A DNA stretch of 64,000 nt, from sequence record ON529852.1; one strand, 5' to 3'. Both the position numbers and the translations under genes were made by a program. Numbering within the stretch: position 1 is the first letter of the stretch; each line of letters opens with the position of its first letter. Of this stretch, positions 9,600-53,700 are shown in pieces. A model generated the notes under the pieces. The model did not search any database, was not told where the DNA came from, and worked only from the letters and a program-made list of their open reading frames with translations.

Positions 9600-10096
9600 T
9601 GTTTGGCTTTCAACCGCCGCTCGACGCTCGGCGGCACGAGCCAGGACATATCCTCGCCGATGCGCGCGAGTTCACGGGCCATGCTGGAGGAGACGTGCAG
9701 GTAGTCCGACTGGCAGATCAGATAGACCATCGGCAGGTCAGGGGCGATCCGTTCCATGACGCCATGGATGCCGAACTCGTCGTTGAAATCGCTGGCCTGG
9801 CGGAAGGCGCGAACGAGGTGGGTCGCTTCCACGGACCGGGCGGCGGCCGCCAGGCTGCCTTCGAAGGCGAGCGTAAAGATGCGCGACGCGTCCTCGGGGA
9901 ACTGCGCCTTGCACGCCTCGTAGGCCATAAAGGACCGTTCTTTGGGTTCGAACAGTCCACGCTTGGCGGCGTTGCTGCCCACCGCCACATACAGGACGTC
10001 AAAGACGGTCAGGGCCTGACGGATCACGTCGAGATGCCCTCGGGTGATCGGGTCGAACGACCCGGCGTAGAAGCCGATTTTCGGCCCCTCGTTCAT
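9596..10096 (-). CDS. coaD: phosphopantetheine adenylyltransferase
   Basis: YAGSFDPITRGHLDV (HxGH), LVRAFRQASDFNDE and VSSSMAR match CoaD signatures; 166 aa is the expected size. Confidence 0.9.
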   Translation of the reverse strand: MNEGPKIGFYAGSFDPITRGHLDVIRQALTVFDVLYVAVGSNAAKRGLFEPKERSFMAYEACKAQFPEDASRIFTLAFEGSLAAAARSVEATHLVRAFRQASDFNDEFGIHGVMERIAPDLPMVYLICQSDYLHVSSSMARELARIGEDMSWLVPPSVERRLKAKQ

Positions 10097-10518
10097 GGAT
10101 GCAAGTCCAGCGGCGCCACGGCGCGTTCGATGGCGATCTTCGGGCCGAAGATGTAGGCGCAGGTGTCCAGCGGGAAGAGGTGCACCACAGAGCCGTCCAG
10201 CAGCGGGTAGGTCGGATCGTTGACCACCGCGCAGGGGAAGCCCAAGCGCGTGGCGATCGCCAGCGCCTCGTTCATCTGGCGGTTATCGCAACCCATCGAC
10301 AGGACCGTGCCGAAACCGCGATCCTCGGCCCACGCCTTGAGCCAGTTCTGCTGGGTGACCGTCCAGGTCTGGCGATCCTTGAGCGCCATCTGGGTGCCGG
10401 CGTGATGCGACTGGGCGTGCCCCTTGCCGGGGTTCATGGACTCCATGTCGGTGCGCACCAGCAGATAGACGCACAGCAGTTCCTCGGCGCTCTCGGCCGG
10501 GGTCGGCAAATCAGTCAA
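10093..10518 (-). CDS. peptidyl-tRNA hydrolase type 2 (Pth2)-like
   Basis: YLLVRTDMESMNPGKGHAQSHHA and later D-x-T/T-C-x-x-I-x-GP resemble the Pth2 motifs. Confidence 0.75.
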   Translation of the reverse strand: MTDLPTPAESAEELLCVYLLVRTDMESMNPGKGHAQSHHAGTQMALKDRQTWTVTQQNWLKAWAEDRGFGTVLSMGCDNRQMNEALAIATRLGFPCAVVNDPTYPLLDGSVVHLFPLDTCAYIFGPKIAIERAVAPLDLHP

Positions 10519-20374: not shown

Positions 20375-20400
20375 CTAGAGGTCCGAGTGACGGTTGTCAA
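20375..20400 (-). promoter_or_regulatory. sigma70-like promoter (class II)
   Basis: TTGACA-17nt-TAGGAG followed by GACGAC/GGAGG leader. Confidence 0.6.
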
Positions 20401-20416
20401 CGCTCTCGCGCCAAAG

Positions 20417-20444
20417 AAAAAAGCGGCGGGATTGCTCCCGCCGC
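20417..20444 (-). terminator. intrinsic (rho-independent) terminator of the hfa-like operon
   Basis: GCGGCGGGA-GCAA-UCCCGCCGC 9-bp stem followed by UUUUUU. Confidence 0.9.
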
Positions 20445-20470
20445 CTCTCATTCAGCCTTGATCCGAAGAC

Positions 20471-21538
20471 TTACGGACGGGCGGTGAAGGAGCCCGAGTT
20501 GCCCACCGCCGAGGCGGAGGCCGACAGGTTGCCGGCGACGATCGAGCCGCCGACGTTGACTTGCGACACCTGCGGACCGGTGTTGACCTGCGTGAAGTTC
20601 GGCAGGTTCACCGACGCGCCGATGAAGCTGGCCGACGAGCCCACGGCCGAGGCCGAAGCGGTCAGGTCGCCACCGACGCTCACCAGGCCGATGTTGGTCT
20701 GGGCGAACTGCGGGCCGTGATTGGTCTGCTTGACCGAGGTCCAGCCGCCGTTGGTGATCGGGCCGTTCGCCGAAACGAAGAGGCTGTTGCCGAACGCGCC
20801 GGCGCTGGCGTTCAGGTTGTCGTTGACCAGGGCGGCGCCCACATTGGTCTGGGCGACTTGGACGCCGGTGTTGGCCTGGTTGGCGCCCGGAACGGCGCCG
20901 AGCGTCGTGGTCAGGCGCAGGTTGTTGCCCACGGCCTGCGCCATCACGTCGGCGCTCATGTTGACGGCGACGCCGACGACATTGGTCTGCGCCAGTTGCG
21001 CCCCGCCGTTGATCTGGGTCAGGTTCGTCTGGACATTGCCCTTGTTCAGAGCGGCGTTGTTGCCGAGCGCGACCGTTTCGACGTTGAGGTCGCGGCCCGT
21101 GGCGACCAGGCCGATGTTGGACTGCGCCGCTTGCGAGCCATAGTTCTCCTGGCGGCCCAAGACGTCATTCTGATTGGCGCCGTTGGTCGTCAGGGTGTTG
21201 CCGATCGCCTGGGTCGAGACGTTCAGTTCGCGGCCGACGGCCACCAGGGCGACATTCGCCTGGGCGGATTGAGCGCCGGTGTTGAACTGGGACACGTCGC
21301 GCGCCGAGATGTTCTTCGTCGCGCTGGTGGCGGCGGTGGCGTCGTAGAACAGCGAGTTGCCGATCGCCTGCGGCTGGACCGTGGCGTCGCGGACGACGAT
21401 GGCGCCGACGACGTTGGTCTGACCGGCTTGCGGGCCGGAGTTGTTTTGCGACTGAGCGCCGCCGATCGACTGGGCCGAAGCGGCGCCGGCGATCAGGAGG
21501 GCGGCCGAAGCGGCTGCCAGAATCAAAGTCTTACGCAT
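20471..21538 (-). CDS. secreted Q/N/G-rich repeat protein, HfaD/curlin-like
   Basis: Sec signal MRKTLILAAASAALLIAGAASA; seven repeats QxNxGxQx(A/S/G)QxN(V/I)...AxG(N/S); third gene after hfaB-like. Confidence 0.75.
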   Translation of the reverse strand: MRKTLILAAASAALLIAGAASAQSIGGAQSQNNSGPQAGQTNVVGAIVVRDATVQPQAIGNSLFYDATAATSATKNISARDVSQFNTGAQSAQANVALVAVGRELNVSTQAIGNTLTTNGANQNDVLGRQENYGSQAAQSNIGLVATGRDLNVETVALGNNAALNKGNVQTNLTQINGGAQLAQTNVVGVAVNMSADVMAQAVGNNLRLTTTLGAVPGANQANTGVQVAQTNVGAALVNDNLNASAGAFGNSLFVSANGPITNGGWTSVKQTNHGPQFAQTNIGLVSVGGDLTASASAVGSSASFIGASVNLPNFTQVNTGPQVSQVNVGGSIVAGNLSASASAVGNSGSFTARP

Positions 21539-21632
21539 ATGAGATATTCTCCCGTTGATGATGTGACGGCGCTCGGATGAGCCCCGCTTACTCACGACCG
21601 AGCCCTGAGGCTACGCCGGTCGTTCCTCCCCG

Positions 21633-21678
21633 CCGGGACGTCCCGGAGGTTGGCGACGGGGCGGCGTGGGCCGCCCCG
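21633..21678. promoter_or_regulatory. intergenic 14-bp palindrome plus 9-bp hairpin between hfaB-like and hfaD-like genes
   Basis: CCGGGACGTCCCGG (21633-21646); CGGGGCGGC-4nt-GCCGCCCCG (21657-21678). Confidence 0.6.
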
Positions 21679-21691
21679 AATGATGATCGGA

Positions 21692-22582
21692 CTAGGTCCG
21701 GAAACTGGCGTCGACGAGCGGCGCGCAGTCGCGGAAGTAGTTGCCGTAGAGCGGGTTCAGCAGTTCCAGCGTGGCGTATTCCAGCGTGGCGCGGACGCCC
21801 AGTTGGAGCGGCTCCTGGCCTTGCTTGCCGGTGTTGATGTCCACCAGGTAGTCGCCGAAGAAGCGGAACAGGCCGGCGCGGGTCTCGTAGCCGATGATCT
21901 GCTTCTGCACCGAGACGGTCTTGACGACCCTCAGGGACTTGGTGTCGACCAGCCGCAGGTCCACCGCCGTGTTGATCACGTAGTAGCGCATGCCGGCCTC
22001 GAACAGGCTGATGCCCAGTTCGGCGCCGCCCGAGACGATGTCGTAGTTGACCTCGGTGATGCCGCCGACGATGTAGTAGTCCGAGCCCTGATACTGACCA
22101 GCGGTCAGGTTCAGGCGGCGCAGCGCGGCGGCCGAAGGGTTCGCCGGATCGTAGGCGGGGTCCTGGATCAGTTGGTTCTGCGTCAGGGTGGCTTCGCTGG
22201 AGGCGATGTCCATGTCGAAGCGTTCGACCTGCTCGACGCCGTCCAGCTTGCCCAGGGCCGACATGACCATGAGCGAACCGCCCTGGGTGATGCGGAAGCC
22301 GCCTTCACTGGCCTCGTTCGAGAACTTGCCGGTGTAGTCGCGGATTTGCCCCACGGCGATACGGTTCGGAACCACGCTCTGACGCGTCGCCTGGGCGAAG
22401 CATTGGATGGCGGGGTCCATCGGGCTGGAGTTCAGCGTCGGGCGGCTACCGACCACGACCGGGGCCTGGCCCTGGGCGTTCAGCATGGGAGAGACCGGGG
22501 CGGACGTCGAGGCGCAGGCGGCCGTCGACAGGGCCAGCGCCGACAGCGCGGCCAGGGTGATGATGCGGTTCTTCATGTTCAT
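21692..22582 (-). CDS. hfaB: CsgG/HfaB-family outer-membrane secretion lipoprotein
   Basis: Signal peptide with lipobox-like TAAC; IAVGQIRDYTGK, ITQGGSLMVMSAL, VERFD, YYIVGGITEVNY, AVDLRLVDTKSLRVV, QEPLQLGVR are CsgG/HfaB hallmarks. Confidence 0.9.
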   Translation of the reverse strand: MNMKNRIITLAALSALALSTAACASTSAPVSPMLNAQGQAPVVVGSRPTLNSSPMDPAIQCFAQATRQSVVPNRIAVGQIRDYTGKFSNEASEGGFRITQGGSLMVMSALGKLDGVEQVERFDMDIASSEATLTQNQLIQDPAYDPANPSAAALRRLNLTAGQYQGSDYYIVGGITEVNYDIVSGGAELGISLFEAGMRYYVINTAVDLRLVDTKSLRVVKTVSVQKQIIGYETRAGLFRFFGDYLVDINTGKQGQEPLQLGVRATLEYATLELLNPLYGNYFRDCAPLVDASFRT

Positions 22583-23076
22583 GCAGCCCCGCCCGGTTGA
22601 CCATTCGTCTGCGAGCCGGAGCCCGTGTTCGTATTGGTCTGGTTGCCCTGGCTCGTGACGGTGTTGTCACGAATGGTGGTCGTGGCGTCCTGGGTGTTGC
22701 CCGTCGAGGTCTGGTTGTTGTTGACCTGATTGGACGAGCCCGAGCACGTCAGCGAGGCGCCGACGGCGGAAGCCGAGCAGTTGTTGTGGGTCACCGACTG
22801 GTCGATGAACTGGAACACGTTGTTGGTGTTCGCGGCCGAACCGCCAAGGAGGCCGCCGGCCCCAGCGACGGCGGCGGGATTGCCGGCCTGAAGCTGATCG
22901 AAATATCCGGCCTTGTTCAGTTCGAACAGTTGCAGGCTGTTTTGCTTGGCGACGCGATCATTGGCCGTCCCGAAGCGCCACGGCGCGTCTTCACCGATGG
23001 AGCGATCCTGGGCGTGCGCGGCGCCCGCCAGCATGACAAGAGCCGCAGCGGCCCCCGCGAGAATCTTCATCCTCAT
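22579..23076 (-). CDS. secreted N/Q/T/S-rich protein, HfaA-like by position and composition
   Basis: Start MRMKIL with GGAGGG RBS; signal peptide ending AHA; low-complexity N/Q/T/S C-terminus; ATGA-coupled to hfaB-like. Confidence 0.6.
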   Translation of the reverse strand: MRMKILAGAAAALVMLAGAAHAQDRSIGEDAPWRFGTANDRVAKQNSLQLFELNKAGYFDQLQAGNPAAVAGAGGLLGGSAANTNNVFQFIDQSVTHNNCSASAVGASLTCSGSSNQVNNNQTSTGNTQDATTTIRDNTVTSQGNQTNTNTGSGSQTNGQPGGAA

Positions 23077-23118
23077 ATAAAAGTCCCTCCGTAACGGCGC
23101 GTGCGCCTTGATGATGGG

Positions 23119-23151
23119 CCGGGGCGCGGGAGACTTCCCGCCGGCCCCGGT
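23119..23151 (-). promoter_or_regulatory. 5' leader hairpin of hfa-like operon
   Basis: CCGGGGC/GCCCCGG outer stem plus GCGGG/CCCGC inner stem just downstream of the predicted start site. Confidence 0.55.
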
Positions 23152-23165
23152 CAGTGATCGAGGGT

Positions 23166-23191
23166 GTAAAGAAACCATTTGCGTCTGTCAA
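23166..23191 (-). promoter_or_regulatory. conserved phage promoter repeat (class I) driving hfa-like operon
   Basis: TTGACA-GACGCAAATG-GTTTCTTTAC. Confidence 0.75.
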
Positions 23192-26773: not shown

Positions 26774-26798
26774 GTAAAGGAATGCTGCGCGGTGTCAA
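26774..26798 (-). promoter_or_regulatory. conserved phage promoter repeat (class I, 1 nt shorter)
   Basis: TTGACA-CCGCGCAGC-ATTCCTTTAC. Confidence 0.75.
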
Positions 26799-27622
26799 CC
26801 CGGCGCGTCGCCGTAATCGCGTTCGATCGGTTCAGCGCCCGCCATAATGAACTCGGTGCGGTTGACGACGCGCTGGAGCGGCGGGACAGACAGACGGGTC
26901 ATGGAGGAGCGAACCACCGACGTGTCCTCAAGACGCGCCGGGCGCATGGCGGCGGGAATGCGGGCGGCCTCGGCCGGCGTCAGGGGCCGCTCGACCGTCT
27001 CCTTGCGCACGAACGTCCCAAGACGGAACGCCTCAGGGTAGTCGGCGAACACCACGCCCTTCTCGGCGATCATGTCGACCATCGCCTGGCGCCCCTTGCC
27101 ATGCATCTGGCTCGGCGAGTATTGCGCCCGGCACGCCATGGAGGCGGCGTTCTTCTGGCAGTCGAGGTTACGCCACAGGAACATGTTGGCGGCTTCCCAC
27201 GGGTGGGGAAGCTGACAGACACGCGCGTCGAACGCCGGCAGGCGATCGTTGAACGGCTCCCAGTAGCGGATGGCGTGCGCCATGCGCGCGGCCGCCATCG
27301 ACGCCAGCACCGAGGTCATCTTGACGATCTTGCCGGAGAAGAAGATGTCGCTCTCGTAGTCGGGCGCCTCCCACACCAGGCTGATCTCGTCGGACTGGAC
27401 GTAGCCGATCTTGGCGTGGGTCTTGTCGACGAGATACTCCGCCACCACGATCATCGCCTCGGTCATGCGCGGGTCAAACGGCCGCTCCATGCCCTTGGTG
27501 AACTTGGAGAAGCCTCGGCCGTCGATGCGGGCGTAGACCGGCAGGGACGGGAAGAAGCGGCGCGCGGTCTCGCGTCGCTCGTAGTCCTTCATGCGGTCGC
27601 CGAGTTCGTCCTTGGTCGTCAT
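26795..27622 (-). CDS. tRNA(His) guanylyltransferase Thg1-like 3'-5' polymerase
   Basis: LGDRMKDYE, YARIDGRGFSKFT...PFD, GYVQSDEISL, FDARV, F.WRN.DC.KN motifs. Confidence 0.92.
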   Translation of the reverse strand: MTTKDELGDRMKDYERRETARRFFPSLPVYARIDGRGFSKFTKGMERPFDPRMTEAMIVVAEYLVDKTHAKIGYVQSDEISLVWEAPDYESDIFFSGKIVKMTSVLASMAAARMAHAIRYWEPFNDRLPAFDARVCQLPHPWEAANMFLWRNLDCQKNAASMACRAQYSPSQMHGKGRQAMVDMIAEKGVVFADYPEAFRLGTFVRKETVERPLTPAEAARIPAAMRPARLEDTSVVRSSMTRLSVPPLQRVVNRTEFIMAGAEPIERDYGDAPG

Positions 27623-30561: not shown

Positions 30562-31716
30562 TCAGCCGCCCGGCTCCAGGCGCACGCCGTCGAGCGCCTT
30601 CAACATGTCTTCACGGGTCGCGGTGTAGTCGCTCAAGGCCCAGGTCATCCGCGCCGCCATCAACCCGGCGCCGATCTCCTTGGGCTTGAACCCCTTCGCG
30701 ACGAAATCATCCCCATTGATGGGCAGCGTCGGGACGGACCAGGAAGAGACTTCGGTGAAGACGTCCGGGACCCCGGTCGCCCGCGCCCAGGCCTCGGCAT
30801 AGGCGAGCGAGGCTTTTTCGCACGCCAGGAGGTATTTCAGGTTCTTTAGGGACGGCGGGCTATACTGGCGGTTCTCCAGGAATTTCGCCAGAGCCGTCTC
30901 GGGATTCGACCAGCGCCAGCGTTTGGCGATCGGCGACCAGTTCTTGGCGAGCGCGCTCATCAGCACCACGGGATCGCGGGTGTGGACGTGCGCGATGTCC
31001 ATGCGTTCGGGCAAGACTTCGCCGGAGACCTCCAGATGATCCAGCAGGCCCAGGCGGCGCATTTCCCGCACCATGCGCGGCCCGCTGTCGTGGGCCACCA
31101 CCTTCTTCATCTCGACCCAGATACGTTCACCGGAAATGGCGCGCAGACCGTGACCGAACAGGGCGCAGGCCGCCGCCGCCGCCGGGTCAAGGGGACCCCG
31201 TCCATAACGACCGTGGAAGCGGAAGAAGCGCAGGATGCGCAGGTGGTCTTCCTCAATCCGCTCGGAGGCGTCGCCGACAAAGCGGACCACGCCGGCGTTC
31301 AGATCGTCCGCGCCCCCGTAGGGGTCGATCAGGACGCCCTGGAAGGTCATCGCCATGGCGTTGATCGTCAGATCGCGTCGCGCCAGGTCTTCATGCAGGT
31401 CGCGGGTGAAGGCGACCGTGGCGTGGCGGCCGTCGTGCTCCGATTCCGTGCGCAGGGTGGTGATCTCGTAGGGCTCGTCGCCGATCACGACCGTCAACGT
31501 GCCGAACTCGATCCCCGTCGGATAACAGATGAGGCCCAGACTTTCGTAGATGGCCTGCTGTTCGTCGGGCGTGGCGTCCGTGCACAGGTCGACATCCTTG
31601 TGCGCCTCGCCCCGCAAGGCGTCGCGCACACAGCCGCCGACGAACCACAGACTGAAGCCGCGCTCCTGGTAGGCGCGTTCGACCGCCGCCAGTTCTGGGG
31701 TGACCGGCATACGCAT
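30562..31716 (-). CDS. cca: class II CCA-adding tRNA nucleotidyltransferase
   Basis: VGGCVRD, DVDLCT, EITTLR, DGRH loop, DLARRDLTINAM, EDHLRILRFFRF; no HD domain. Confidence 0.88.
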   Translation of the reverse strand: MRMPVTPELAAVERAYQERGFSLWFVGGCVRDALRGEAHKDVDLCTDATPDEQQAIYESLGLICYPTGIEFGTLTVVIGDEPYEITTLRTESEHDGRHATVAFTRDLHEDLARRDLTINAMAMTFQGVLIDPYGGADDLNAGVVRFVGDASERIEEDHLRILRFFRFHGRYGRGPLDPAAAAACALFGHGLRAISGERIWVEMKKVVAHDSGPRMVREMRRLGLLDHLEVSGEVLPERMDIAHVHTRDPVVLMSALAKNWSPIAKRWRWSNPETALAKFLENRQYSPPSLKNLKYLLACEKASLAYAEAWARATGVPDVFTEVSSWSVPTLPINGDDFVAKGFKPKEIGAGLMAARMTWALSDYTATREDMLKALDGVRLEPGG

Positions 31717-38910: not shown

Positions 38911-39137
38911 CAAACGCCTACCTTCCACACACGGCGCGCCACCACGACGCCGACACCCATGCCGACGAGGGTCAGCACCGCAAGAAACCCGCCACGCAGG
39001 GCGTGTTCCGCCTGGCTCTCGCCATATCCGGCGAGACGCTTGATCCAGTAGGCGGAGCCGCCCATCATCACGATGGAGACGTAAACGCCGACCAGGACCG
39101 ACGCCCACAGGCGCAACGCCTTCACTCCGGCGCTCAC
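38910..39137 (-). CDS. small two-helix membrane protein
   Basis: GTG start overlapping stop at 39134; two hydrophobic helices. Confidence 0.65.
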   Translation of the reverse strand: MSAGVKALRLWASVLVGVYVSIVMMGGSAYWIKRLAGYGESQAEHALRGGFLAVLTLVGMGVGVVVARRVWKVGV

Positions 39138-40144
39138 GTCTGAACCGCGCCTTTCGCGATGCCGGACAGACGGATGGCGGCGTGGTTGCCCAGGATCGAG
39201 CCTTCCACCAACCACTCCACGCGGGTGCGGTAGAGCGGCGGGTGATCGACGGCGTCGCGGTAGCCAGGGGGCGCCGTTTCTTTGGAGATCAGGCCCAGGT
39301 CGGCGACTTGCGGCGGGTTGTTCATCAGCCCGACGACGCCTTCGGGCTTCAGCGCCACCACATAGATCGAGGTGGTGTCGCCGGGCTCGTTGAAGTCGAT
39401 GATCTGTGCATCGACTTCGTTGTAATCGGTGCACAGGATCGTGACGGTCCGCCCCTGCCGGGTCGTATAGGTGGCGATACGCCGGCCGTTCTCATCTTTA
39501 TCCCAGCCGATATAGACGTGATCCGTCGACGGCCTCGCGCCGACCGTCAGCAGGTTCCGCATGCGTTTGCTGGTGACGAGGTGGGTGGCGTTCGTCTGTT
39601 CGATGGCGCGATCCAGGACGGCCAACCGAAGCGGCCCGCCCATATCGAGAACGGCGTCGTCGGCGATCCGATGCTTCAGTCCTGTGGAATAGGCGTAGGC
39701 GGCCGTGCCGTCGCCATTGATCATCCGATCCACCAACGACTTCGCCGCCAGGCGGTGATGCATTCGGCGACGCAACGACAGCAACGAGGCACCGGAGTCC
39801 TCGACCAGGGCGGCGTCCACGTCGCAATCGCCGCACATGATCTTCAGCGTATCTTCGCTGCGGGGTTTGATGGTGGTGAAGCGCTCGCCCTCGCGCTTCA
39901 GGGCGCCCCCCGAGACGGTCAGGAACGGCAGCGCCTGCAAAAGGTCCTCCGCCACCAACGCTTCGAGATATTCGGCCTGGCGCATGTCGCCGCGCTCCGC
40001 TGCGTCTTCCCTCAGGTCTTCGAGATAGGAGACGACGACGGCCTGGCGCTCGCCGGGCTGCGCGGCGGGTGCGGCTTCAGCCACGCCGGCGGCGATCAGG
40101 GAGGCGGCGGAGGCCGTGGCGTACAGGAAGGCGCGGCGGTTCAT
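39134..40144 (-). CDS. major-capsid-protein paralog (HK97-fold, phiCbK-type) with N-terminal Tat signal
   Basis: NRRAFL + h-region + AEA; then LLQALPF, GDCDVD, INGD, LAVLDRAI, SKRMRNLL, IIDFNE, TSIYVV, YRTRVEWLV, AAIRLSGI, recalled as conserved blocks of this capsid family. Confidence 0.75.
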   Translation of the reverse strand: MNRRAFLYATASAASLIAAGVAEAAPAAQPGERQAVVVSYLEDLREDAAERGDMRQAEYLEALVAEDLLQALPFLTVSGGALKREGERFTTIKPRSEDTLKIMCGDCDVDAALVEDSGASLLSLRRRMHHRLAAKSLVDRMINGDGTAAYAYSTGLKHRIADDAVLDMGGPLRLAVLDRAIEQTNATHLVTSKRMRNLLTVGARPSTDHVYIGWDKDENGRRIATYTTRQGRTVTILCTDYNEVDAQIIDFNEPGDTTSIYVVALKPEGVVGLMNNPPQVADLGLISKETAPPGYRDAVDHPPLYRTRVEWLVEGSILGNHAAIRLSGIAKGAVQT

Positions 40145-51847: not shown

Positions 51848-52396
51848 CTAGGCGGCGTATCGGTCGAGCATCCAGTGCAGGTCCAGCGGCTCGAAGGCGT
51901 CGAACTCCTCGATCAGGTCGGCTGTCACGGGAAAGGCGATCACTTCAGCCGAGGCGGACGGGACGACGCTGCGGCGACTATCCGCCACGGCGCCCTTGCC
52001 GCGTCCGATGCTCTGGCGAGGCTTCACGCCGCGTTTCGGCTTGTAGGTCGCCTTGCGGCGCAGGGCGTTGCTCTGCTTGGACGTCTCGGCGTCGTCGGCC
52101 CGCTTCAGCCCCAGGCGGTCGAGCCGGCCCAGGACGGCGCTGCGGCTGCGATTGCCCATGAGCAGGCTGATCTCCTGGGCGGTCTTGCCCTCCCGCCAGA
52201 GCCGGACCAGATCGTCAACCTCGGCCTGGGGCCAGGCGTGGGTCGGCTTTTTCGGCTGCGCGGCCCTGCGGGCCTGGACCTTTGCGATCCGGCGCAGTTC
52301 CGCCCGCTCCTGCGGATCAGCGGGAACCTCCATGTCGTCCCAGTCACCGGCGCCGCGCCAGTCTCGGCTCGGATCGCCTTCCAGAAGCGTCGTCAC
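51848..52396 (-). CDS. gcrA: GcrA-like cell-cycle regulator, N-terminal domain only
   Basis: WPQAEVDDLVRLWREGKTAQEISLLMGNRSRSAVLGRLDRLGL matches the GcrA N-terminal domain; GTG start overlaps serS stop; no C-terminal CxWP-type domain. Confidence 0.8.
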   Translation of the reverse strand: MTTLLEGDPSRDWRGAGDWDDMEVPADPQERAELRRIAKVQARRAAQPKKPTHAWPQAEVDDLVRLWREGKTAQEISLLMGNRSRSAVLGRLDRLGLKRADDAETSKQSNALRRKATYKPKRGVKPRQSIGRGKGAVADSRRSVVPSASAEVIAFPVTADLIEEFDAFEPLDLHWMLDRYAA

Positions 52397-53700
52397 CCCG
52401 CCAACCCGACTTCCGGCAGGCGCGGGCGCAGGTAGGGGACCAGAATGGCCGGCATGTCGACGCCGCCGTCGTCGGTCTGGTGGTTCTCGAACAGCGCCGC
52501 CAGGGTGCGGCCGACCGCCAGGCCGGAGCCGTTCAGGCTGTGCAGGTAGCCCAGCTTGCCATCCGCCTGACGATAGCGACCCTTCATCCGCCGGGTCTGA
52601 AAGTCGCCGCACCAGGAGATCGAAGCGATCTCGACATAGCGTTGCTGGCTGGGCATCCAGACTTCCAGGTCGATGGTCTTGCGGGCGGCGAAGCCCATGT
52701 CGCCGGCCGCCAGCAGCACCTTGCGATAGGGCAGTTCTAGGTATTGCAGGACCGCCTCGGCGCAGGCGACCTTGCGATCGAACTCGGCCTCGGCCTGTTC
52801 GGGCTCGACCAGGGAGACCAATTCCACCTTCATGAACTGATGTTGGCGGATCAGGCCGGTGGTGTCGCGGCCGGCGGCGCCGGCTTCGGCGCGGAAACAG
52901 GGCGTCAGGGCGGTGAACCGCAGCGGCAGGGCCTCGCGCTCGGTGGTCTGTTCGCGCGCCAGGTTGGTCAGCGGCACCTCGCCGGTGGGGATCAGCAGGT
53001 TGCCGTCCGTCAACTGGAAAAGGTCGTCCTTGAACTTCGGCCACTGCCCGGTGGCGTACATGACGTTGGGCTTGACGATGAACGGGACCGACTTTTCGAC
53101 GTAGCCGTGCCGGTGCACATGCAGGTCGAGCATGAACTGGCCCAGGGCGCGCTCGACGCTGGCGAAGGCGCCTGACAGGACGGCGTAGCGCGATCCGCTC
53201 AGCCAACCGGCGACGGCGCTGTCGTAGCTGTTCCCGGCCAGGGTGACATGGTCCTTGGGCTCGACATAGGCGCGGCGCTTGCCCCATTCGCTGATGACGA
53301 TGTTGTTCGCTTCGCCGCCCTCGGGGATGTCCTCGGCAGGCAGGTTCGGCAATAGGTCGACCAGGCCTTCGCGGGTCTTGTAAAGGGAGTCTTCCTGCTT
53401 CGCCAACCGCTCCAGGCGCGGTTTGATTTCGGCCATGCGGGCGCGCAGGGTCTCTTCCTCGGACGGCGGCGCATCGCCTTCCCGCGCCGCCACGGGCCGA
53501 ACGTCCTGGCGGAGTTCACCGATCCGGGTCGAGATGGCGTTGCGCTCGGTCTGAAGCGCCTGGAGTTCAGTGCGGGTCGCCTGGAGGTCGCGATGCGCCG
53601 CGCGGGCGTCGTCGACGATGGTCTTCACCGCTCCGCCGCGTTTGGCGATCGCCGCGACGACGGCGTCGGGTTCATTGTCGATCAGGTGAAAATCAAGCAT
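52393..53700 (-). CDS. serS: seryl-tRNA synthetase
   Basis: N-terminal coiled coil, LPNLP...PEG, LIPTGEVPL, CFRAEAG...GLIRQHQFMKVEL, IDLEVWMP, EIASIS, HSLNGSGLAVGRTLAALFENHQ. Confidence 0.97.
   Translation of the reverse strand: MLDFHLIDNEPDAVVAAIAKRGGAVKTIVDDARAAHRDLQATRTELQALQTERNAISTRIGELRQDVRPVAAREGDAPPSEEETLRARMAEIKPRLERLAKQEDSLYKTREGLVDLLPNLPAEDIPEGGEANNIVISEWGKRRAYVEPKDHVTLAGNSYDSAVAGWLSGSRYAVLSGAFASVERALGQFMLDLHVHRHGYVEKSVPFIVKPNVMYATGQWPKFKDDLFQLTDGNLLIPTGEVPLTNLAREQTTEREALPLRFTALTPCFRAEAGAAGRDTTGLIRQHQFMKVELVSLVEPEQAEAEFDRKVACAEAVLQYLELPYRKVLLAAGDMGFAARKTIDLEVWMPSQQRYVEIASISWCGDFQTRRMKGRYRQADGKLGYLHSLNGSGLAVGRTLAALFENHQTDDGGVDMPAILVPYLRPRLPEVGLAG

Follow-up and report, generated by a model that had tools for sequence, protein, structure and literature searches.

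What does a lytic phage gain from a secretion system of the type VIII (curli-like) kind? Phage-encoded pores of the CsgG type have been reported previously, but no substrate has been recognized for them and what they do is a puzzle (PMC7029224, PMC9004378). We examined this question for a three-gene unit of Brevundimonas phage vB_BpoS-Kabachok, a 356-kb jumbo siphophage of the Dolichocephalovirinae whose host is B. pondensis LVF1. The analysis was performed on a window of 64,000 nucleotides from sequence record ON529852.1 (window coordinates, used throughout, are record coordinates minus 62000), in which the unit occupies positions 20417–23191 of the minus strand; its genes are referred to here as g1, g2 and g3. 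Based on sequence comparisons, the unit is on balance probably an export module that is complete in itself and belongs to the CsgG/HfaB (type VIII-like) class, which would place a phage-specified polymer on infected cells.

In the direction of transcription the unit consists of a promoter motif, a 5' hairpin, g1, g2, a structured spacer, g3 and a terminator. All three open reading frames (ORFs) are intact, without internal stops or frameshifts, and the identical three coding sequences (CDS) are annotated in the GenBank record, where g2 alone is named ('curli production assembly protein'). Each of the three proteins has an export signal at its N-terminus as read from the sequence, this being of the Sec type for g1 and g3 and of the lipoprotein type for g2.

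The middle gene, g2 (21692–22582, minus strand), encodes a putative outer-membrane channel of 296 amino acids (aa). Its signal peptide has a basic n-region, a hydrophobic core and an S-T-A-A-C lipobox that supplies the lipobox Cys. The protein matched the Pfam CsgG family (PF03783) with 64 bits (cutoff 20.8; E = 1.5e-17) over profile positions 10–199 of 210, and matched solved CsgG chains with E = 3e-9 over residues 45–277. It is 43% identical to a bona fide HfaB and was recognized by the NCBIfam HfaB model (NF037935) with 235.4 bits (E = 6e-70), a score that does not reach the equivalog cutoff of 300. In PHROG, g2 belongs to family 20175, which is annotated 'function unknown'. A preliminary description of the locus, made from the letters of the DNA, had taken the middle gene for a CsgG/HfaB secretion-pore lipoprotein, and the Pfam match, the matches to solved CsgG chains and the lipobox bear out this family assignment. 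It had also allowed that single hfaB-like genes might already be annotated in related phages, as is indeed the case in GenBank, where the pore gene is named 'CsgG-like' in Colossus and 'hfaB' in CcrPW. By analogy with CsgG, g2 would assemble as an outer-membrane channel.

Such a channel could in principle act by itself. Phage CsgG homologs without fiber subunits exist and have been proposed to be gated pores (PMC9004378); g2 might likewise, as has been suggested for phage Melnitz, be a pore of the outer membrane that times lysis or allows uptake, with g1 and g3 accessory or irrelevant. The other two genes speak against this reading, which we disfavor as improbable. Both lie in the same transcription unit as g2, both are kept across phage genera, and both are under purifying selection. 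The ratio of nonsynonymous to synonymous substitution rates (dN/dS) between Kabachok and its sister phages was 0.12–0.17 for g1 and 0.13–0.17 for g2, and g3 also lay within 0.12–0.17, the range for all three genes; g1, g2 and g3 all evolve under purifying selection. In addition, no recognizable lysis genes adjoin the unit in the annotated record.

The third gene, g3 (20471–21538, minus strand), encodes a putative exported polymer subunit of 355 aa with a Sec-type signal and seven repeats of approximately 46 aa each. AlphaFold2 gave a confident all-beta model (predicted local distance difference test (pLDDT) 86.4, predicted template modeling score (pTM) 0.83) with four strands per repeat. The NCBIfam HfaD model (NF037936) matched g3 with 31.3 bits and E = 1.3e-7, the cutoff of 100 not being reached, and the same model gave 24.5 bits for gp243 of the Caulobacter phage CcrColossus. 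A direct Pfam scan of g3 gave no match; precomputed matches to Pfam PF27277 (HfaD) were found for the g3 relatives P0121 (66% identical) and P0123 and for the third genes of three further loci (L012, L023 and L024). When a hidden Markov model (HMM) of the g3 family was run on true HfaD it scored 35.9 bits, compared with -32 ± 4.8 for composition-matched shuffles, a difference of approximately 14 standard deviations that depends on residue order. The hhalign comparison of g3 with true HfaD gave a probability of 14.6%. A C-terminal motif as well as repeat motifs are common to g3 and true HfaD. Based on the NCBIfam match, the PF27277 matches of its relatives, the HMM score relative to shuffles and the C-terminal motif, we accept g3 as a remote relative by sequence, not an ortholog, of HfaD, and to that extent agree with the preliminary description, which had taken the third gene for hfaD.

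A beta-rich repeat protein is also what one sees in many phage fibers, and the proteins flanking g2 could be virion parts such as fibers, in which case the unit would not be a secretion system. We consider this the least probable of the readings weighed here. Cleavable export signals are present on all three proteins, with a lipobox on g2, and the unit lies far from the structural genes. Searches of the PDB and of viral structures (BFVD) gave no significant match of g3 to a phage fiber or tailspike fold, and no PHROG structural family was found.

We compared the DNA of Kabachok with that of Domovoi and Bambus, which identified the mature part of g3 as a swapped cassette (20481–21460, minus strand). 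The upstream flank of the cassette has approximately 90% DNA identity to both phages, and the downstream flank has 96% identity to Domovoi and 82% to Bambus. Over mature g3 the DNA similarity vanishes, from 21460 to 20481 relative to Domovoi and from 21467 to 20527 relative to Bambus. Protein identity of mature g3 across the swap is 30–32%, and the cross-type dN/dS of 0.88–1.06 is saturated. Since DNA identity is lost exactly over mature g3, the exported subunit has thus been exchanged as a cassette; Kabachok and Domovoi are assigned to one species in the paper that described them. The swapping suggests a surface-exposed molecule under diversifying pressure, and we regard g3 as a hypervariable surface-subunit cassette.

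The cassette also bears on what the exported polymer might be for. An exposed subunit that near-identical phages swap has the look of something under diversifying pressure, and for this reason we judge the most likely role, although tentatively, to be that of altering what binds the infected cell, that is, the masking of receptors or the exclusion of other phages. Adhesion, or 'sibling capture', is a live rival that we consider unlikely. Here the exported polymer would stick infected cells to surfaces or to neighboring hosts, so that phage would find new hosts immediately on release. Hfa and curli systems do serve adhesion (10.1101/2022.07.20.500906), the same idea has been proposed for the CsgG/CsgF genes of pelagimyophages (PMC7029224), and conjugative elements, for which contact between cells counts, have homologous three-gene modules within their transfer operon. 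However, if the function were adhesion, one would not obviously expect alleles of the mature subunit to be swapped between phages of the same species, and phage Melnitz, which has the pore genes only, showed no clumping (PMC9004378).

The first gene, g1 (22579–23076, minus strand), encodes a protein of 165 aa whose Sec-type signal ends at an A-x-A site; its stop overlaps the start of g2. This gene had been taken for hfaA, an identification that we reject on three tests. The NCBIfam HfaA model (NF037934, cutoff 50 bits) matched neither g1 nor any of its 35 family representatives at E <= 1, hhalign against bona fide HfaA gave a probability of <1%, and HMM scores lay inside the range of composition-matched shuffles. 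What g1 has in common with HfaA is its small size, its signal peptide and its position directly upstream of an HfaB-like gene. We also considered g1 as a CsgF-like plug or as a protein like CsgA, CsgB or CsgE; no Pfam match supported this, and a PDB profile search with the g1 family returned no CsgA, CsgE or CsgF chains. More generally, g1 had no match in Pfam, NCBIfam, PHROG or PDB. Its AlphaFold2 model (pLDDT 46.6) shows a largely disordered chain with a single helix (residues 38–55) and is too poor for fold searching.

The g1 family comprises 35 clusters among 1.84 billion proteins, and g1 is 40% identical to gp241 of Colossus. Family alignments show a common build, with a motif and helix right after the signal peptide (g1 residues ~18–63), then a Gly-rich linker, and then an N/T/Q/S-rich tail with two invariant Cys residues. 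The N-terminal motif is found again in small genes that precede an HfaB-like gene elsewhere, namely in a contig of bacterial appearance (L023, probability 98.6%), in conjugative elements (L015, 98%), in a Hyphomicrobiales genome (L006, 97.5%), in a further contig (L024, 95.5%) and in a viral contig of 229.5 kb (L018, 93.5%). In the last of these the small protein is a hybrid, with a g1-type N-terminus and a true HfaA core at its C-terminus. The recurrence of the motif upstream of HfaB-like genes, together with this hybrid, leads us to view g1 as a different body in the slot of HfaA. The N-terminal segment thus seems to behave as a separable module, for which we propose docking on, or targeting to, the HfaB-type pore.

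How does the unit compare with known systems? In Caulobacter, HfaB is required for the surface delivery of HfaA and HfaD, which there form SDS-resistant complexes (10.1101/2022.07.20.500906; PMC6707917). The Kabachok unit resembles hfaABD in gene order (small secreted protein, CsgG-like lipoprotein, large secreted repeat protein), in its three export signals, in the 43% identity of g2 to HfaB, and in the repeat and C-terminal motifs that g3 has as in HfaD. It differs in that g1 is unrelated to HfaA in every test, that g2 and g3 score under the ortholog cutoffs, and that the unit resides on a lytic jumbo phage, has a phage promoter and has its mature g3 swapped between strains. A reference operon from Robiginitomaculum (L009) passes all of the NCBIfam cutoffs, with 77.5 bits for HfaA, 407 for HfaB and 174 for HfaD. 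It came from a scan of genome contigs by exact peptide words, in which the loci found were all distant (Robiginitomaculum and Hyphomicrobiales) and none was from Brevundimonas or Caulobacter. HfaB-like proteins of the variant modules score 219–239 bits, under the HfaB cutoff (219–222 for L015–L017, L006 and L023). With g2 and g3 below the ortholog cutoffs, the unit is thus related to hfaABD as a variant and is no copy of the operon that anchors the host holdfast. Of the hfaA-hfaB-hfaD operon that the preliminary description had proposed for the phage, the HfaB-family g2 and the HfaD-like g3 hold up; the first gene does not, nor does orthology of the other two.

This distinction matters for the second live rival, interference with the holdfast anchor, according to which the HfaB- and HfaD-like proteins of the phage would mix or compete with host HfaA, HfaB and HfaD at the pole and leave the holdfast shed or unanchored. 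In its favor are the identity of g2 to bona fide HfaB, the membership of the hosts in the Caulobacterales, and the fact that this same pole of the cell is where phages of the subfamily attack. Loss of Hfa proteins results in holdfast shedding (10.1101/2022.07.20.500906). On the other hand, the g2 proteins of phages form a clade separate from true HfaB and score below the ortholog cutoff, the small partner g1 is from another family than HfaA, the same variant module is found in integrative and conjugative elements (ICEs) and in bacteria outside the Caulobacterales, and a dominant-negative role needs no full conserved set of three genes. We consider holdfast interference a little less likely still than adhesion.

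Curli (type VIII) systems share with the unit a gene for a CsgG-family outer-membrane lipoprotein beside those for secreted Q/N/G-rich repeat proteins that are predicted beta-solenoids. The Kabachok repeat differs from these in its length of ~46 aa and its four strands, and the unit has no match to the curlin repeat, CsgE or CsgF. In an alignment to E. coli CsgG, the region of the CsgG constriction loop is of HfaB-type sequence in g2. Neither g1 nor g3 had a Pfam match to curlin, CsgE or CsgF; the suggestion of curli-like substrates thus found no curlin, CsgE or CsgF signal in Pfam or in the PDB profile search with the g1 family.

Type VIII-like pore genes are also encoded by pelagimyophages and by the Methylophilales phage Melnitz (PMC7029224, PMC9004378). 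The Melnitz CsgG is a distant tblastn match of g2, with 28.6% identity. These phages carry CsgG and CsgF without a recognized fiber subunit, whereas Kabachok has an HfaB-type pore, no CsgF, and an HfaD-like candidate substrate together with a small partner in one unit. The modules of ICEs and bacteria (L015–L017, L006, L023) have the same layout, a small upstream protein with the g1-type motif (97.5–98.6%) and HfaB scores below the cutoff, and in L023 the downstream protein carries PF27277 (HfaD). They are unlike the phage unit in being cellular or ICE-borne and in having HfaB-like proteins that fall in clades separate from g2. The third protein of the ICE modules has no detectable similarity to g3.

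To what extent is the unit a property of this phage group? The layout of small protein, pore and repeat protein is found in five Brevundimonas phages (Kabachok, Marchewka, Bambus, Domovoi and Papperlapapp), in a 122-kb phage-like contig, and in CcrColossus, where a terminator comes after gp241–243. The pore gene is also present in CcrPW, where it alone was examined and where the full three-gene unit is probable. The earlier emphasis on an intact unit of three genes, rather than on hfaB alone, is supported by this conservation across related phages. Among 50,697 phage records, g2 relatives were found only in these Brevundimonas and Caulobacter phages and, as distant CsgG, in four Melnitz records; two scans of IMG/VR yielded five contigs. 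The nearest relatives of g2 are phage-like metagenomic proteins, named cellular proteins having at most ~50% identity. In a neighbor-joining tree, which includes no Caulobacteraceae HfaB, the phage g2 proteins group in a single clade, to which neither true HfaB nor the ICE-type clade belongs. The phage-like nearest relatives and the separate phage clade argue for old carriage in this phage group over recent capture.

The same evidence bears on whether the unit could be functionless cargo recently captured from a host. Jumbo phages do carry many host-like genes. However, the relatives of g2 and its own phage clade, the phage-type promoter of the unit, the dN/dS of 0.12–0.17 and the conservation of the unit between Caulobacter and Brevundimonas phages all count against it, and we disfavor cargo as highly improbable.

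Several of the related loci have features of their own. A contig of 499,572 bp that is listed as viral in IMG/VR (L013/L019), unusually large if it is truly a single phage genome, has the module with an HfaD-family third gene of 475 aa. The unrelated, AT-rich jumbo viral contig with the hybrid small protein (L018:3539–6134; 229,507 bp, IMG/VR) encodes the hybrid of 151 aa, an HfaB-like protein of 438 aa with a C-terminal extension, and a repeat protein of 262 aa with HfaD-like motifs. In L015 (5459–8363), L016 and L017 a 181-aa protein with the g1 motif, a 310-aa HfaB-like protein and a 454-aa repeat protein are encoded directly past trbI/DUF2274 of a Trb-type conjugative element, and the HfaB-like protein of these ICEs is identical in several species ('MULTISPECIES'). 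In L024 (4159–5313) a gene for a family-2 glycosyltransferase directly follows the HfaD-like gene, which hints at a link of the module to surface polysaccharide.

We next consider the signals that frame the unit. The promoter-like motif at 23166–23191 (minus strand) consists of TTGACA, a spacer and TTTCTTTAC. The pattern TTGAC-N10-15-TYYYTTAC has 12 matches in the window, all of them on the minus (coding) strand, compared with 0.01 predicted from shuffles. The 12 copies (TTGACA, ~12 nt, TTCCTTTAC) have their first T at 2292, 3430, 11568, 16326, 19577, 23191, 25906, 26798, 29013, 49390, 51782 and 59933 of the minus strand, and are probably phage promoters of a single temporal class, with a -35 element of host type. 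Marchewka, Bambus and Domovoi have kept the copy that precedes g1. No promoter was called at the unit by a generic sigma-70 scanner; the motif search found it directly. The leader (23077–23165) has a folding energy of -40.7 kcal/mol (z = -2.55) and forms a G+C-rich hairpin by folding at ~23119–23150 (minus strand), which is kept in the sister phages with substitutions confined to the loop and a bulge. At the other end, the intrinsic terminator (20417–20444, minus strand) has a G+C stem of 9–14 bp, a GCAA loop and U6. It was missed by a simple terminator scanner and detected by folding (-31.4 kcal/mol, z = -3.49), and none of 200 shuffles was equally stable. The view that the phage carries a complete transcription unit is borne out by the promoter motif, the leader hairpin, the three intact signal-bearing ORFs and the terminator.

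A mechanism for the favored reading, a phage-borne export module, can be outlined from these features. Transcription would start from one of the phage's own recurrent promoters, for which the TTGACA -35 element suggests recognition by the host RNA polymerase. As read from their signal sequences, g1 and g3 would cross the inner membrane via Sec and g2 would be lipidated. By homology with CsgG, g2 would then form an oligomeric outer-membrane channel through which unfolded g1 and g3 may pass. Outside the cell g3 is predicted to fold into a beta-solenoid of seven repeats and might stack into a stable polymer, by analogy with HfaD/HfaA and with curli. The small partner g1 could serve as an adaptor, nucleator or anchor, its N-terminal motif docking on or targeting it to the HfaB-type pore. 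In this way the infected cell would acquire a coat specified by the phage.

Several points weigh against the existence of such an export module. Both g2 and g3 fall short of the NCBI ortholog cutoffs, for HfaB and HfaD respectively. No relation of g1 to HfaA, CsgA, CsgB, CsgE or CsgF is detectable by profile and structure-profile searches, and its structure model is essentially disordered. Fold searches with the g3 model in PDB and BFVD gave no significant match; the top PDB entries were the functional amyloids FapC (E = 0.45) and CsgA (8c50, E = 3.5), both at chance level. The amyloid character of g3 is therefore only an analogy, drawn from the behavior of HfaA and HfaD. Similarly, the biological role proposed above is read from the cassette pattern and from analogy.

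A further element of the unit is the 153-nt spacer between g2 and g3 (21539–21691, minus strand), which contains three hairpins and no U-tract. It has a folding energy of -72.9 kcal/mol (z = -3.0), and the hairpins are retained in four phages, with one compensatory change from G-C to C-G. An Rfam search of the spacer gave no family match. Through processing, stability or attenuation, the spacer could set the pore-to-subunit ratio. A sub-threshold match of the terminator hairpin to Acido-1 in Rfam was read as chance. Directly past the terminator, and before the next gene (KABACHOK_01630), lies a second and different TTGACA element (20375–20401, minus strand) that lacks the TTCCTTTAC half.

The region around the unit is non-structural, with small and auxiliary genes, the structural genes being far away. 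The unidirectional block that surrounds the unit includes, according to GenBank, genes for a peptidyl-tRNA hydrolase (10093–10518), a tRNA-His guanylyltransferase (26795–27622), a CCA-adding enzyme (30562–31716), a GcrA-like cell-cycle regulator (51848–52333) and a seryl-tRNA synthetase (52393–53700). ARAGORN found no tRNA genes in the window (1–64000), though 24 are reported for the phage. In the middle of the non-structural block is a CDS annotated as 'major capsid protein' (39134–40144, minus strand), flanked by a deoxyribonucleotidase gene and by hypothetical genes of small size; the phage may have a second capsid-like gene here, or the annotation may be open to doubt.

Within the literature that could be searched, the unit is mentioned neither in the description of Kabachok nor in the phiCbK/Colossus genomics paper. 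Its analysis identifies the g1 family as a previously unrecognized family of small proteins and as the mark of a variant hfaABD module, one that has spread not only in bacteria but also on phages and conjugative elements. A broader conjecture, for which we would claim a little less than for the masking role itself, is that giant phages of stalked bacteria coat infected cells with a beta-solenoid polymer, that the cassette-exchanged exposed subunit provides for the exclusion of rivals or for kin-specific sticking, and that the g1 motif is a general address tag for HfaB-type pores in phages, conjugative elements and bacteria. In the present case the pore comes with two conserved partners that bear export signals, and it does so in cultured phage-host pairs: Kabachok and its relatives on Brevundimonas pondensis, CcrColossus on Caulobacter and, as far as the pore gene is concerned, CcrPW, also on Caulobacter. 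With a pore and two partners in such pairs, one can begin to ask what benefit a lytic phage draws from a type VIII-like system.

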